A stretch of DNA of 64,000 bases from Octopus sinensis (taxonomy: Eukaryota): the NCBI RefSeq assembly GCF_006345805.1, contig NC_043019.1, forward strand, positions 27,031,360 to 27,095,359. Reading direction: 5' to 3'. The notes beneath the pieces are model-generated. The model was not told where the DNA came from, searched no databases, and was given only the letters and a program-made list of their open reading frames with translations. Below, piece after piece: positions 22,524-42,047 of this stretch (position 1 is the stretch's first letter; the number at the start of each line of letters is the position of its first letter). The translations under genes were made by a program, and so were the position numbers.

Positions 22524-23450
22524 ATGAAATTTCGATATGGAAGCATCTATATTTGGCCGATAGCCATCGTATTTTGTAACCTGTTGGTTATATTATCCTA
22601 TTATGCTCTAGCGATTTCGAAGGTCAAAATGACTCCGACCTACATGAACCAGAAAATCATGAACTGTGATGCGAAGCGACGACTACCCAGCTGTATTATT
22701 ATAGGTACACCGAAGTCGGGTACGAAAGCATTACTTGAGTTTATTGGGGTACATCCATCTGTTGTCGTTGCCGAGGGAGAACCGAAATTTTTCCACAGGG
22801 AGGATAACTTCCAGAAAGGGATGAATTACTACTTGGAGAAAATGCCTCTGTCTTGTCCTGATCAAATCACTATAGAAAAATCACCGGAATATTTCTACAG
22901 TGACAAAGCACCGGTTCGGATAAAAAAAATGAACAAAACTATCAAGTTGATTTTGATTGTTAAAAATCCCGTGGATCGTTCTATATCGGAATACATCCAC
23001 CGACGATACTACCACAACATAAAGGAGGCAAAACACACCTTTGAAGAGCTTGTTTACGATGATAAAACCGACAAACTCAAGACGTCATATTACCCGATTA
23101 TGAGATCACTTTACTCTCGATATGTCATTCGCTGGCTGCAACATTTCCCCTTAAACCAGATCCACGTGGCAGACGGTAGCAAACTGATTGTAGACCCATC
23201 AGAAGAGGTGCTCAAAGTTCAAGATTTTCTCGGTCTAAAGAGGGTGATTTCCAAGGACAACTTTATATATAATAACACCAGGGGATTCTACTGTTTGTTA
23301 ATAGACTCTGAATCGAAATGTTTGCCACCAAATAAGGGTCACCGAAACGTAAGCACAAGCAAGGTAATAGCAAAACAAATGGCTAAATACTTTAAACCAT
23401 ATAACGATATGTTTTTCCAGTTAATAAATAAAACTCTATCTTGGACTTAA
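22524..23450 (+). CDS. HS3ST: Heparan sulfate glucosamine 3-O-sulfotransferase-like protein (HS3ST1/HS3ST5-like), paralogue 1, 308 aa, type II Golgi membrane sulfotransferase
   Basis: Open ORF with an N-terminal hydrophobic anchor. Motifs: 5'-PSB loop IIIGTPKSGTKALLE, AEGEPKFF, ITIEKSPEYF, 3'-PB VKNPVDRSISEY, DGSKLIVDP, NNTRGFYCL..KCL..NKGH and terminal LSWT. The track's start at 22512 is a TTG; the first ATG is 22524. Family-level call only, orthology not established. Confidence 0.93.
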   Translation: MKFRYGSIYIWPIAIVFCNLLVILSYYALAISKVKMTPTYMNQKIMNCDAKRRLPSCIIIGTPKSGTKALLEFIGVHPSVVVAEGEPKFFHREDNFQKGMNYYLEKMPLSCPDQITIEKSPEYFYSDKAPVRIKKMNKTIKLILIVKNPVDRSISEYIHRRYYHNIKEAKHTFEELVYDDKTDKLKTSYYPIMRSLYSRYVIRWLQHFPLNQIHVADGSKLIVDPSEEVLKVQDFLGLKRVISKDNFIYNNTRGFYCLLIDSESKCLPPNKGHRNVSTSKVIAKQMAKYFKPYNDMFFQLINKTLSWT

Positions 23451-24299
23451 ATAAAATATATACAGCATGAAAACAAAACTAGAATCAGGTGAAAAAAAAT
23501 GAGAAAGCCAAGAAGAGCAACAAACACTTTAGCGAAAACAAAACAAATGAATAAATATAGACTATTTTTGAAATTATTTTCGTGTGTGTTGTTTTGATTA
23601 TGAAGGCGAAACTAAAGTAATGCGTTAGATGATGTATCTTATGTTCAAAATATACAGAACGTTTTTCGTTTTGTTTCCGAACAGCTTGCTGTACTCGAAG
23701 TATCTCTATTCCCTTAGCTAGATGGAAATAGGCACCAGATAGATTTATATGTAGAATACTTTTTTTCTATTTTTAGAAGAATAGGACCCTAATACTGCCG
23801 AATCACAACAGCTTATTGGAAGTCATTGAGGTTTGGATTCGGCAGAAGATAGCTTGTGACTGATAGATTTCTATGGAAAGTGTGGTTATTGACACAACCT
23901 TTCGAAAGAACGTGCGTAGGAACAGTAAGACCATATTTCGGTGGAAGTATAATGTTCTAAGCACAGAAGTGGTTGTTTGATCAAGGGATACATTTTGCAA
24001 GTACGTAGATCTGGGTTCGATTGCACAGCGCGGTACCTAGGTCAAGAGTCTGCTCTCAGAGACTCAAATAAATCAACAAATGAAGTTTGGTAAGTGGAAA
24101 CTGTAATGAAGTACCTCGAATATTCGTGTCTGGTTGTGTACATTTATACACACACATACACACACACACACACACACACATATATATATATACATATATA
24201 TATATATATATGATATTTATTTCTCACTGATTCGATGATTCGAGTACTTTTTTTTATTGATTCTACCAATAACGGAACAGGAAACAGTATATATATATA

Positions 24300-24823
24300 C
24301 CGTAAATCTTCGAGTATAGTCCGCCCTTAAGTATAATACGCAGGGGATTTTTAGGAGGCTGTACCTCTGAAAAACCTAAACCTTGTGTATAATACGCACT
24401 CCTTCTCTAACTTGAGTCGTGCGTAATTAAGCCAGCAGCACCTAGTCGAACAAACACTTCCGCGCATGCGTAATACAATAATGGTGATGTTCTTAACTGT
24501 TATATGGGAGTGTAAATATGTTTGCAAATTGCTTTTGTTACATGTTATTCTGTGTTCTGAATACTTTTATTTTAATAGATGTTGCTTATTGCAAGTTATG
24601 ATGATTCTTTTATGACTTCATTGCTTTCAGGCTTAGCTTAAGGTATTTTTGCACCTGACATCACAAAATGTGTCAGAATAAACATTGCCGGGCAGCAAAT
24701 AGAGACTCGGACATTGCCTAGAAAATATTTTTCATCTTTAACCTCGTATATATAATACGCACTAGGGACTTTGACCTTTAAAATTTTGGGAAAAAAATGC
24801 GGTTTATACTCGAGGATTTACGA
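24300..24823. mobile_element. Tc1/pogo-type MITE flanked by TA
   Basis: TA|CCGTAAATCTTCGAGTATA ... TATACTCGAGGATTTACGA|TA, with internal repeats of GTATAATACGCA. Confidence 0.8.
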
Positions 24824-25807
24824 TATATGTATATATAATATATATATATATATATATATATATATATATATAATATATATATATATATATATATATATAT
24901 ATATATACATATATATACTTATATATATATAGATATATATATATACATACGTATATACGAATGAGTAGACAAACGAAAGGAGGGCACTCAGCGTATTTAT
25001 TGGGAGTTATATGTATAGATCTAAACAGATTGATTCAGACTCCTTGCTCCTTGGTACTCAGAGTACCAAAGAGTCTGACTCGAACTGTGATGCAGCACGG
25101 ACTTTGTCAGTGAACAGGTCGCGGATTTTAGCGACGAAAATATTTTGACAAATTAAACTTAAATGTTGAAGTGAATCGAACGGCTTTTGTGTGTTTCTTA
25201 AATGGCTTATAAACACCTTCCACGCTGCAATTGTTTTCGTTTCAGCACACGATCTCAGATCAAATTACTTGCTATGCGAGTACATCTCCGTAATATATAT
25301 ATATATATATATATATATATATATATATATATATATATATATATATATTATATATATATTATATATATATATATATATATATATATATATATATATATAT
25401 ATATATATATGTATGTATGTATATGTATATGTATATGTATATGTATGTATATATTTATGTATAATATATGTATATGTATATATATACGTATATATGTAAT
25501 ATATATATATGATACAGTGTTTATTAGAGATATCACACTGCACTTGTTACAATAAATCGTTTGTTTAAACTGCGACTGAAAAGATTAAAAGTTTTTTGCC
25601 ATCTCTAATAAAAACTATAATTCTAAATCCTTTTTATGCATTGCGTTGTTCCTTGAAGGAAATTTCTATTATCATTTCTAATATATCTTTATATTACATA
25701 TGTACCATGATCTCGTGTTTAAAATTATTGAAATTTACAGGAATTTCCTCGGGAGCGGATTTACAGGTCGTATCCCGAAACGGTAGATAACGTTTTATAG
25801 CTATACA

Positions 25808-26108
25808 TAATGACCATGGGATTGCACCTAGAAAGTTCCTCTCCGAGGCACAAGTCCGGGCATGGTTGTTTATGGAAGATCTGCGGTCAGCCGTGCTACC
25901 AGCCTCCCCTCTCCATGCCACTGATGTTACCCAAGGGAAAGGCAAAAGGGCCGATACAGCTTGGCACCAGTGACGTTGCAACTCATTTCTACAGTTGAGT
26001 GAACCGGAGCAACGTGAAATAAAGTGTCTTGCTCAAGTACACAACATACAGCCTGGTCTGGGAATCGAACCTACTACCTCAGAATTGTGAGTCCGACGCT
26101 CTAACCAC
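25808..26108 (-). mobile_element. SINE family C, tail variant 1
   Basis: Homologous to 17618-17940 along its length. Confidence 0.8.
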
Positions 26109-40689: not shown

Positions 40690-41030
40690 GTGGTATATAT
40701 ATATATATATATATATATATATAATATATATAATATATATACATATATATATACACATATATATAGGCACATATATACATATATATATATATACATATAT
40801 ATACATATATATATATATATATACATATATATATATCTACATATATATACATATATATATATATATAATATATATATATATATATATAATATATATATAC
40901 ATACATACATATATATCTATACTTATATATATACATATATATATACACATATATATATACATATATATATATATACGTATACACATACACACACACACAC
41001 ACCACACATATATATATATATATATATATC
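40690..41030. repeat. (TA)n-rich microsatellite ending about 50 bp upstream of the gene 2 splice acceptor
   Basis: Direct inspection. Confidence 0.9.
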
Positions 41031-41031
41031 A

Positions 41032-41078
41032 GTTTTTTTTTCTCTGTTTTTGATTGCTTTGTTTTTGTCTAATTTCAG
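41032..41078 (+). promoter_or_regulatory. 3' splice acceptor of a 5'-UTR intron of HS3ST-like gene 2
   Basis: T-rich tract ending TGTCTAATTTCAG|AAA, with AG at 41077-41078, exactly 18597 bp from the gene 1 acceptor. Confidence 0.75.
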
Positions 41079-41117
41079 AAACTCTATCGGAACGACCTGA
41101 TTTCAAGGTTACGGAGT

Positions 41118-42047
41118 ATGATGAATCTTCGGCTTCGAAACGTTTATATTTTACCGACAGTCATCTTGCTCTGTTTGCTGTTGGGATTATTTTCCCATTT
41201 TTCCCAAGTGTTTCCCCAGGGCAAGTTGACTCCAGCCTACACGAACCAGAAACTCATGAATTGTGATGCGAGGCAACGGCTACCCAGTTGTATTATTATA
41301 GGTACACCGAAGTCGGGTACGAAAGCATTACTTGAGTTTATTGGGGTGCACCCTGCTGTTGCCGTAGCCGAGGGAGAACCGAAATTTTTCCACAGAGATG
41401 ATAATTACCAGAAAGGGATGAACTACTACGTGGAAAAAATGCCTTTATCTTGTCCAGACCAGATCACAATGGAAAAATCACCGGAATATTTCTATAGTGA
41501 CAAAGCACCATTTCGGATACATAAAATGAATAGAACTATCAAGTTGATTCTGATTGTTAAAAATCCTGTGGATCGTTCTATATCGGAATACATCCACCGA
41601 CGAACTCACCACAGCGGAAAAGAAGCAAAACATTCGTTTGAAGAGATCGTTTACGACGATAAAACCCAGAAACTGAACGTAGGATATTACCCCATCGCCA
41701 AATCGGTCTATTATCGCTATCTCATCCGCTGGTTGCAATATTTTCCACTAAACCAGATTCACGTAGCAGACGGTAGCAAACTGATTGTAGATCCGCAAGA
41801 AGAGCTGCTCAAAGTTCAAGATTTTCTCGGTCTAAAGAGGTTAATTTCCAGGGATAACTTTATATATAATAACACCAGGGGATTCTACTGTTTGTTAATA
41901 AACTCTGAATCGAAATGTTTGCCACCAAATAAGGGTCACCGAAACGTAAGCACAAGCAAGGTAATAGCAAAAGAAATGACTAAATACTTTAAGCCATATA
42001 ACGATATGTTTTTCCAGCTCATAAAGAGGAATCTATCATGGACTTAA
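41118..42047 (+). CDS. HS3ST: Heparan sulfate glucosamine 3-O-sulfotransferase-like protein, paralogue 2, 308-309 aa (ATG at 41118 or 41121)
   Basis: Same motifs as paralogue 1 and colinear with it at a constant 18597-bp offset. ATG 41121 is the positional homologue of ATG 22524. Confidence 0.93.
   Translation: MMNLRLRNVYILPTVILLCLLLGLFSHFSQVFPQGKLTPAYTNQKLMNCDARQRLPSCIIIGTPKSGTKALLEFIGVHPAVAVAEGEPKFFHRDDNYQKGMNYYVEKMPLSCPDQITMEKSPEYFYSDKAPFRIHKMNRTIKLILIVKNPVDRSISEYIHRRTHHSGKEAKHSFEEIVYDDKTQKLNVGYYPIAKSVYYRYLIRWLQYFPLNQIHVADGSKLIVDPQEELLKVQDFLGLKRLISRDNFIYNNTRGFYCLLINSESKCLPPNKGHRNVSTSKVIAKEMTKYFKPYNDMFFQLIKRNLSWT

Follow-up and report, generated by a model that had tools for sequence, protein, structure and literature searches.

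Tandem HS3ST-derived sulfotransferase genes of Octopus sinensis with conserved catalytic residues and replaced heparan sulfate-recognition positions

Introduction

Among the modifications of heparan sulfate (HS), 3-O-sulfation is the rarest and carries the most information, and the enzyme family that catalyzes it, the HS 3-O-sulfotransferases (HS3STs or 3-OSTs), is usually treated as functionally uniform. Unusual sulfation is known in cephalopod glycosaminoglycans (GAGs), including CS-E, K-units and fucosylated chondroitin sulfate (CS).

HS3ST1 and HS3ST5 (Hs3st-A; PDB 3bd9/7scd and 3uan/1vkj/1zrh) have a type II topology, a catalytic domain within one exon, a PAPS-loop Lys, a catalytic Glu, K123, S159, an NKG Lys and a C-terminal disulfide (mouse 3-OST-1 numbering, which is used below unless stated). 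HS3ST 2/3/4/6 (Hs3st-B; for 3-OST-3, PDB 1t8u/6xkg) have the motifs GVKKGGTR, EPHFFD-- (with a two-residue deletion) and KGR, a two-exon domain and very long low-complexity stems. In 3-OST-3, ten substitutions (K161A, K162A, R166E, E184Q, H186F, D189N, K215A, Q255A, K368A and R370E) each singly leave <1% of HS activity; the uronate carboxylate is the partner of R166, and the 2-O-sulfate that of R370 (PMC8341778). Here we compare with these enzymes a pair of octopus proteins encoded in tandem.

Gene organization

The window, i.e. the whole 64-kb stretch of DNA analyzed, comes from the chromosome-scale scaffold C23 of Octopus sinensis and contains two intact forward-strand ORFs, the proteins of which are 79% identical without any gap; no further copy or fragment beyond the pair was found on searching the 64-kb window. 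The two already carry the automatic NCBI names 'HS3ST1-like' and 'HS3ST5-like'. The first-pass annotation equated the genes with their ORFs; the ORF coordinates and strand stand, but the gene span needs correction, as the NCBI models add one in-window upstream coding exon to each, giving the following layout:

5807-5890, forward strand: upstream coding exon of gene 1, MEKLTVIFISSPDHKAASSLDSGVAGYM (NCBI model XP_029649780.1), ending in ATG and followed directly by a GT donor (gtaaat)
22482-23450, forward strand: last exon of gene 1, preceded by the acceptor tctaatttcag, with the ORF at 22524-23450 (308 aa) encoding the cytoplasmic tail, membrane anchor (~aa 9-31), stem and entire sulfotransferase domain (aa 50-308)
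39400-39459, forward strand: upstream coding exon of gene 2, MVIKCSTLVKTTLALLIPLT (NCBI model XP_029649781.1), ending in ACG and followed directly by a GT donor (gtaata)
41079-42047, forward strand: last exon of gene 2, preceded by the same acceptor, tctaatttcag, as in gene 1, with the ORF at 41118-42047 (309 aa)

In both genes the conserved splice acceptor lies 42 nt (14 codons) 5' of the ATG of the ORF, and for both upstream exons the annotated N-terminus is a 100% tblastn match. Use of the gene 1 start codon is uncertain because other 5' exons appear in the isoforms of other species. The gene 1 domain contains the motifs GTPKSGTKAL, EPKFFH and NKGH, and the active-site motifs of gene 2 are the same. 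The locus comprises two genes in tandem, each with two exons, from a divergent subfamily derived from the HS3STs.

Fold, family and topology

Both proteins contain a Pfam Sulfotransfer_1 domain (7.6e-25 and 7.2e-26). In the PDB they match human HS3ST5 and HS3ST1 best, with E values from 1e-67 to 1e-64; the phmmer ranking against the PDB runs from HS3ST5 (3bd9/7scd, 6.6e-67) through HS3ST1 (3uan/1vkj, 4e-64) and HS3ST3A1 (4e-58) to, far lower, NDST1 (4e-32). The AF2 model (pLDDT 92.3) superimposes in Foldseek on 3-OST-1/3/5 with TM 0.91-0.93 and an rmsd of ~2 Å. The pair belongs to the HS3ST family of PAPS-type sulfotransferases, the HS3STs being its nearest relatives in both sequence and structure. 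Domain identity to HS3ST1/5 is 38-45%, in a nearly gapless alignment and with a shared fold. The NDST N-sulfotransferase domain (PDB 1nst, 8ccy) shares the superfamily fold (TM ~0.7-0.8) but is much more distant (28-29% identity); an NDST identity was rejected, given the lack of a deacetylase region in the 308/309 residues and the position of NDST1 far below the HS3STs. Membership of the HNK-1ST/CHST8-14 family (Sulfotransfer_2) was likewise rejected, neither protein giving a PF03567 hit.

Near its N-terminus each protein has a single hydrophobic stretch (aa 9-31, mean KD 2.2-2.4), modelled by AF2 as a helix over residues 10-34. With four sequons besides, each is predicted to be a type II membrane protein, as are HS3ST1/5, probably in the Golgi and with its N-glycosylated domain facing the lumen. 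The domain is as basic as those of canonical 3-OSTs (net charge +14/+15, pI 9.5).

Active site residues

Alignment with mouse 3-OST-1 (3uan) is ungapped over query residues 50-152 (chain residues 12-114), with octopus residue n corresponding to mouse n+4. This alignment and offset, and the lists of kept and replaced residues given in the first-pass annotation, were all reproduced when the columns were read out. The kept residues are K68, E90, K123, S159, K274 and the C-terminal Cys pair (K64, E86, K119, S155, K271 and C257/C266 in octopus numbering), all invariant across the clade described below; Lys64 is the Lys of the 5'-phosphosulfate loop, Glu86 the catalytic-base residue, Ser155 the 3'-phosphate Ser and the Cys pair that of the disulfide. 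By contrast with HS3ST1/5, the pair has R67P, R72K, H92K, D95H (N in Sepia, H in octopods), R151K, Q163H and R276H, together with a further change in the PAPS loop (G70S) and replacement of the 3-OST-1 gate residue (H278N). The E-x-H-x-x-D motif is absent, being E-P-K-F-F-H in octopods and E-A-K-F-F-N in Sepia.

The HS-binding positions R/K67, R72, Q163 and R276 are fixed in the clade as P, K, H and H, and of the six changes, five (P63, K68, K88, H159 and H273 in octopus numbering) do not vary among the six members of the clade. In a set of 163 further members of the family, 122 have R or K at 67, 124 have R72, 124 have Q163 and 137 have R276; roughly one in seven of the closest representatives of the family has at least four non-canonical residues at the six positions. 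Also invariant in the clade, and unlike HS3ST1/5, are R160 and R161 (octopus numbering); three additional Cys residues (C48, C57 and C111) are conserved. Octopus R92, again invariant, is the Arg that follows FF(D/H) and corresponds to R190 of 3-OST-3, with which the pair shares the fold and catalytic residues. R72K is a conservative change, and R67 is 'less conserved' even in true 3-OSTs (K in 3-OST-3).

Six of the ten positions essential in 3-OST-3 are changed in the octopus pair (the equivalents of K161, R166, H186, D189, Q255 and R370). The initial view that the replaced residues are those needed for HS activity is therefore supported by the 3-OST-3 mutagenesis (PMC8341778), with the qualification that H92 and D95 probably belong to the catalytic-site network rather than being simple HS binders, so that loss of activity is possible.

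Distribution and selection

In the databases searched, the signature is restricted to Octopus, Argonauta and Sepia, which form a clade with 100/100 support on a long stem (0.83 substitutions per site), separate from HS3ST1/5 and from the Hs3st-B enzymes, which form their own 100/99 clade. The clade is isolated by score, with a drop from 629 to 287 bits in a search of 5.8 billion proteins, in which no member was found outside the cephalopods, and a second gap, from 571 to 265 bits, in a set of 1.84 billion representatives. Canonical HS3STs, the existence of which elsewhere in the genome had been left as a question, are present as GVRKxGTR/ExHFFD/KGR paralogues on scaffolds C9, C3 and C7, at least nine loci in all, with at least six two-exon copies of Hs3st-B type on C7. 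Nor are the substitutions the signature of ordinary invertebrate HS3ST orthologues.

The proteins form a coleoid clade; the label 'cephalopod-specific' is provisional, as a possible sister group occurs in a non-coleoid assembly (ENA ERZ26273219). HS3ST-like paralogues from that assembly (P0295, P0155, P0153, P0314, P0315, P0182 and P0316, and also P0318 and P0320) share the derived GT-x-KSGT(K/T)AL(I/L)EF(I)G, DY-x-H (Q163H) and CLPPxKG motifs and loss of the KGR Arg, and similarly are encoded in a single exon, but show only 44% identity and differ at 67 (M), 92 (F/H), 95 (S/V) and 276 (G/E/V); the DAGAT exon of that assembly is only 53% identical to the octopus one. They group with the cephalopod clade with 86/84 support, a grouping that is not significant (AU test p = 0.44) and may reflect long-branch attraction.

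Comparison of gene 1 with gene 2 gives an overall dN/dS of 0.27, with 0.19 for the catalytic domain and 0.70 for the part before it (N-terminal tail, anchor and stem); for Sepia and the other decapodiform orthologue dN/dS is 0.06. These values support strong purifying selection; the first-pass annotation had deduced purifying selection from the intact ORFs.

Discussion

Our results are best accommodated, we consider with some confidence, by a divergent, HS3ST-derived subfamily of PAPS-dependent carbohydrate O-sulfotransferases with a changed acceptor. In such enzymes PAPS binding would be retained and sulfate transferred in line, with Glu86 as the base, whereas the acceptor cleft would have been re-tooled by loss of the uronate-carboxylate Arg, the IdoA 2-O-sulfate Arg, the Gln and the His/Asp pair beside the base, and by gain of Lys88, His91, His159, Arg160, Arg161 and His273. 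If so, the preferred acceptor would no longer be the canonical antithrombin-type or gD-type HS site. Because six HS-critical residues are replaced, in a version found only in octopuses and cuttlefish, a different sugar chain is probably sulfated, likely another anionic glycan, be it an unusual HS context or a different GAG.

That the proteins have remained HS glucosamine 3-O-sulfotransferases, acting on a cephalopod-type HS (e.g. GlcA-rich and IdoA2S-poor) that is read via Lys and His rather than Arg and Gln, appears unlikely, though it has points in its favor: HS3ST5 and HS3ST1 are the nearest relatives, neither the catalytic base nor the PAPS residues have been lost, R72K is conservative and the cleft is still strongly basic. 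Moreover, at the pH of the Golgi, His at 163 and 276 could still bind a sulfate or carboxylate group, such that HS may remain the acceptor, and the R276 equivalent binds the IdoA 2-O-sulfate in 3-OST-3 (PMC8341778), so that its loss might be tolerated at a 2-O-sulfate-free site. Yet H186F, D189N, Q255A and R370E each leave <1% activity in 3-OST-3 and all four positions are altered here, the octopus already has its canonical loci, and a long stem branch that leads to a new state, unchanged thereafter, has the look of a shift in function. The same mutagenesis can be read in another way, in that H186F and D189N singly inactivate 3-OST-3 (PMC8341778), so that H92K and D95H/N, which break the motif beside the base, might abolish catalysis rather than retune it. 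The proteins would then be catalytically dead Golgi proteins that bind PAPS or GAGs and serve as regulators of other sulfotransferases or as lectins; the one-in-seven frequency of strongly altered relatives, which implies that motif decay is common in invertebrate paralogues, fits such an origin. We regard it as improbable. The base or the cofactor loop is what pseudoenzymes usually lose; here the base Glu, K123, K274 and the two residues that bind the PAPS phosphates are invariant clade-wide. The loop changes R67P and G70S are themselves compatible with catalysis, because P-K-S-G-T is the normal PAPS loop in cytosolic SULTs and TPSTs. In addition, dN/dS is 0.06-0.19, and fixation of the substitutes K88, H159 and H273 suggests new constraint, not relaxation.

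A special case of the changed-acceptor reading is that the pair encodes the missing GlcA 3-O-sulfotransferase for the K-unit (GlcA3S-GalNAc4S) of cephalopod CS. This proposal is speculative and, in our judgement, quite improbable. Sulfation of a GAG sugar 3-OH is the chemistry of the family, the changed residues are those that pair with flanking uronates and the clade is limited to cephalopods in the databases searched. To our knowledge, however, the only known GlcA 3-O-sulfotransferase is HNK-1ST/CHST10, a Sulfotransfer_2 member, and we know of no HS3ST-family member that acts on a galactosaminoglycan; the genome has at least 17 PF03567 (CHST/HNK-1ST-family) loci, which are alternative candidates. 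For CS from octopus cartilage, PMC5103875 reports K-type units, citing Higashi 2015, but CS of king crab also has K-units and that of M. chinensis is modified at GlcA C-3 (PMC5103875), while no clade member was found outside the cephalopods.

The broader idea of a new GAG sulfotransferase activity that arose from an HS3ST and acts on a non-HS acceptor, of which K-unit synthesis is the most interesting version, is likewise a long shot; if true, it would give the first such HS3ST-family member. Should the proteins instead prove to be ordinary HS 3-OSTs, the set of residues regarded as indispensable in the family would have to be redrawn. With the residues for the chemistry kept, and most of those for acceptor recognition swapped and then frozen through coleoid cephalopod history, the pair is a tangible candidate, open to cloning, for a new specificity in glycan sulfation. 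The automatic names 'HS3ST1-like' and 'HS3ST5-like' mask paralogues that have probably diverged in function; in the one in seven of the nearest representatives mentioned above, at least four of the six positions critical for HS are changed. The octopus pair is represented by NCBI isoform models and the clade also by Sepia transcripts, one of them full-length, from hatchlings of S. esculenta (RNA-seq run SRR23936171).

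Gene structure and predicted fold

The two HS3ST-like sulfotransferase genes, on O. sinensis scaffold C23, have intact ORFs whose proteins are 79% identical, with zero gaps. Each ORF is contained exactly in an O. sinensis NCBI protein (ORF 1 in XP_029649780.1, ORF 2 in XP_029649781.1), and automatic annotation had already named the genes 'HS3ST1-like' and 'HS3ST5-like'.

Coding features of the gene pair (window coordinates)
5807-5890, + strand, small upstream coding exon of gene 1; NCBI O. sinensis model, found in the window, GT donor at its end
22524-23450, + strand, ORF 1; 308 aa, intact
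39400-39459, + strand, small upstream coding exon of gene 2; NCBI O. sinensis model, found in the window, GT donor at its end
41118-42047, + strand, ORF 2; 309 aa, intact

The last exon of each gene encodes the membrane anchor, the stem and the entire catalytic domain, and a polypyrimidine tract with a 'tctaatttcag' acceptor, identical for both genes, lies 42 nt 5' of each ATG. Isoforms of O. vulgaris and O. bimaculoides have different 5' exons, and the cytoplasmic tail is therefore variable; unlike the exons of the O. sinensis model, those 5' exons were not found in the window. No further copy, fragment or pseudogene of the pair was detected by tblastn within the 64-kb window. A DNA likeness of ~340 bp upstream of both copies was rejected as extra homology, being a (TA)n microsatellite plus the common splice acceptor.

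Both proteins match Pfam Sulfotransfer_1, and their best phmmer matches among all PDB sequences are to human HS3ST5 (6.6e-67), then mouse and human HS3ST1 (~4e-64), HS3ST3A1 (4e-58) and NDST1 (4e-32). An AlphaFold2 model based on a 60-sequence alignment has a mean pLDDT of 92.3 and superimposes on crystal structures of 3-OST-1, -3 and -5 with target-normalised TM scores of 0.91-0.93 and an rmsd of ~2 A. A single N-terminal hydrophobic helix (residues ~9-31) and four N-glycosylation sequons would fit a type II Golgi enzyme. The catalytic domain, with a net charge of +14/+15 and a pI of 9.5, is as basic as those of canonical enzymes. Three cysteines, C48, C57 and C111 (gene 1 numbering), are invariant across the cephalopod clade and are not present in mouse 3-OST-1 or human 3-OST-5; C57 and C111, positioned at or directly before adjacent beta-strands, might pair in an additional disulfide.

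Active-site and acceptor-binding residues

The ungapped alignment proposed in the first-pass annotation for the N-terminal half of the domain was recovered by phmmer (query residues 50-152 against 3uan_A), with K68 of GVRK placing octopus residue n at mouse 3-OST-1 residue n+4. A column read-out against mouse 3-OST-1 bore out both the claimed retention of the catalytic and PAPS residues and the claimed substitutions, i.e. R67P, R72K, H92K, D95H, R151K, Q163H and R276H (mouse numbering). Further changes relative to the mouse enzyme are G70S and H278N, the latter at the 'gate' residue; position 95 is His in octopus and Asn in decapodiform sequences.

Catalytic and PAPS residues (mouse 3-OST-1; octopus; status)
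K68; K64; kept
E90; E86; kept
K123; K119; kept
S159; S155; kept
K274; K271; kept
Cys pair; C257/C266; kept

Mutagenesis of 3-OST-3 stands in here for that of 3-OST-1 at R67, H92, D95 and R276: the 3-OST-3 mutants K161A, K162A, R166E, E184Q, H186F, D189N, K215A, Q255A, K368A and R370E each have <1% activity on heparan sulfate (HS), with R166 making a bidentate contact to the uronate carboxylate and R370 contacting the IdoA 2-O-sulfate (PMC8341778). Mapping by motif offsets places these ten positions at mouse 67, 68, 72, 90, 92, 95, 123, 163, 274 and 276; the octopus pair therefore has replacements at six of these HS-critical positions (67, 72, 92, 95, 163 and 276), the remaining four being the PAPS and catalytic core. 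The canonical PAPS loop is P-K-S-G-T in cytosolic SULTs and P-R-S-G-T in TPSTs; the combination of R67P and G70S should therefore leave cofactor binding unimpaired. In octopus numbering, P63, K68, K88, H159 and H273 are invariant throughout the clade, R92 (equivalent to 3-OST-3 R190) is retained, and R160 and R161 are gained and invariant.

Comparison with canonical HS3STs

The same substitutions are not those of ordinary HS3STs. Among 163 comparison sequences, made up of paralogues, reference sequences and the 150 closest 50%-cluster representatives, 122-137 have the canonical residue at each of positions 67, 72, 92, 95, 163 and 276. Only one of the 163 is changed at all six, and 23 (about one in seven) are changed at four or more; divergent HS3ST-like paralogues are thus a broader, unstudied phenomenon. 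Canonical HS3ST genes, for which the first-pass annotation had advised a search, are present elsewhere in the O. sinensis genome.

Canonical HS3ST loci of O. sinensis (locus; scaffold; motifs; changes)
L003; C9; GVRKCGTRAL, EMHFFN, KGR; canonical
L005; C9:83988358-83992113; GVRKGGTGAL, EVHFFD, KGR; canonical, R72G
L004; C3:143089116-143092886; GASKAGTRAV, EVHFFD, KGR, DYLH; canonical, R67S and Q163H
Hs3st-B-type genes (at least six, two exons each); C7; GVKKGGTRAL, EPHFFD, KGR; canonical

L004 and L005, otherwise canonical, carry changes at HS-critical positions. The O. sinensis repertoire is large (loci L003-L019, at C9:83.99 and 84.08 Mb, C3:143.09 Mb, C7:42-66.6 Mb and C11364), with three A-type-like single-exon genes, of which the C9 pair is separated by 89 kb. 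First exons of the C7 B-type genes encode low-complexity (Asn/Ser-rich) stems of 400-570 aa, and their introns span 50-240 kb; L012/L013 is a single B-type copy split by a frameshift, probably a pseudogene, and L010 and L011 are near-identical.

Distribution and evolution of the clade

When 5.8 billion proteins were searched, first with the protein as query and next with the clade profile, the signature was recovered in only five 90%-identity clusters, below which scores dropped sharply from 629 to 287 bits; phmmer run exhaustively over 1.84 billion representatives gave a similar drop (571 to 265 bits). Members come from O. sinensis, O. vulgaris, O. bimaculoides, Argonauta hians and Sepia (Acanthosepion) pharaonis. 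A Logan contig coding for the clade protein P0004 derives from SRR23936171, a whole-hatchling RNA-seq run of Sepia esculenta, which shows transcription of a clade gene in a cuttlefish. We found no earlier literature description of this cephalopod HS3ST-like clade or of its altered residues. The top non-clade match in the representative search, the ENA protein P0121 (670 aa), has two matched stretches and is possibly a tandem double HS3ST-like domain.

In maximum-likelihood (ML) trees, which are unrooted and lack an NDST outgroup, the clade is supported at 100/100 and sits on a stem branch 0.83 substitutions per site long. Within it, the O. bimaculoides sequence is the partner of gene 1 and that of Argonauta the partner of gene 2 (97/85), which places the tandem duplication before the O. 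sinensis-O. bimaculoides split.

dN/dS values
Full-length ORFs of gene 1 and gene 2: 0.27
Their catalytic domains: 0.19
Their N-termini: 0.70
Two decapodiform sequences compared: 0.06

Nine divergent single-exon HS3ST-like paralogues, all from the ENA HiFi assembly ERZ26273219 (loci L023-L029 among them), join the clade in the unrooted ML tree with support of 86/84. Seven of them have GT-M-KSGT(K/T)AL-EF-G, DY-x-H and CLPPxKG in common, along with loss of the KGR Arg; P0318 and P0320 make up the nine and show Q163H and R276H only. AU tests rejected neither the union of this group with the clade (p = 0.44) nor that of the clade with the canonical octopus gene L003 (p = 0.22). The subfamily may therefore be either a cephalopod-specific duplication or an ancient, older lineage. 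A DAGAT exon adjoining the ERZ26273219 paralogues shares just 53% identity with the best-matching octopus locus, weak evidence against a coleoid source. ERZ26273219 is a metagenome-style assembly in which one eukaryote's contigs, of up to 5.4 Mb at 35-55x coverage, carry at least nine such genes.

Proposed function

The clade is real and conserved, and from its residues we infer a distinct function. Its members are probably active PAPS-dependent O-sulfotransferases, with Glu86 as the likely catalytic base and an acceptor cleft that would be re-tooled to take an anionic glycan distinct from the canonical HS 3-O-sulfation site. That they are instead pseudoenzymes is improbable, given that the base and cofactor residues are invariant and the replacement residues are fixed. 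An HS 3-OST with an unusual sequence preference would offer another account of the altered cleft, albeit one that we consider unlikely.

A narrower version of the favored proposal has the enzymes acting as GlcA 3-O-sulfotransferases that form K-units (disaccharides with GlcA 3-O-sulfate) in chondroitin sulfate (CS); we regard this assignment as very doubtful. To our knowledge, the only known GlcA 3-O-sulfotransferase belongs to the CHST/HNK-1ST family, and the presence of at least 17 loci of that family in the O. sinensis genome argues against a role for the clade in K-unit synthesis. One report documents K-units in CS of octopus, as well as of king crab, and a modification at GlcA C-3 in M. 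chinensis CS (PMC5103875), the latter two being at odds with a clade recovered here from cephalopods only.

Other features of the window

Outside the gene pair, the window is ~65% A+T, with ~11% perfect 1-3-nt microsatellite and a few transposon-like ORFs, none of which has a Pfam match.

Minor features (window coordinates)
27915-28382, - strand, ORF
31517-32173, + strand, ORF
34983-35678, - strand, open frame of 231 aa
55498-55597, run of 100 N (a gap in the assembly or withheld sequence) within a microsatellite-rich region of 25% G+C

The first two ORFs are 33% identical across 113 aa (E 5e-14) and have a common C-terminal '...IVGALG...LLGT..ILRK.L' motif; they look like remnants of one retroelement family, with no Pfam match. 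The 231-aa frame has no Pfam match at E <= 0.01 and contains 'LIYCIRCNLCNKLYIGQMGHRLTDRFTEHLRDV', which by eye looks like the GIY-YIG nuclease module found in Penelope-like retroelements.
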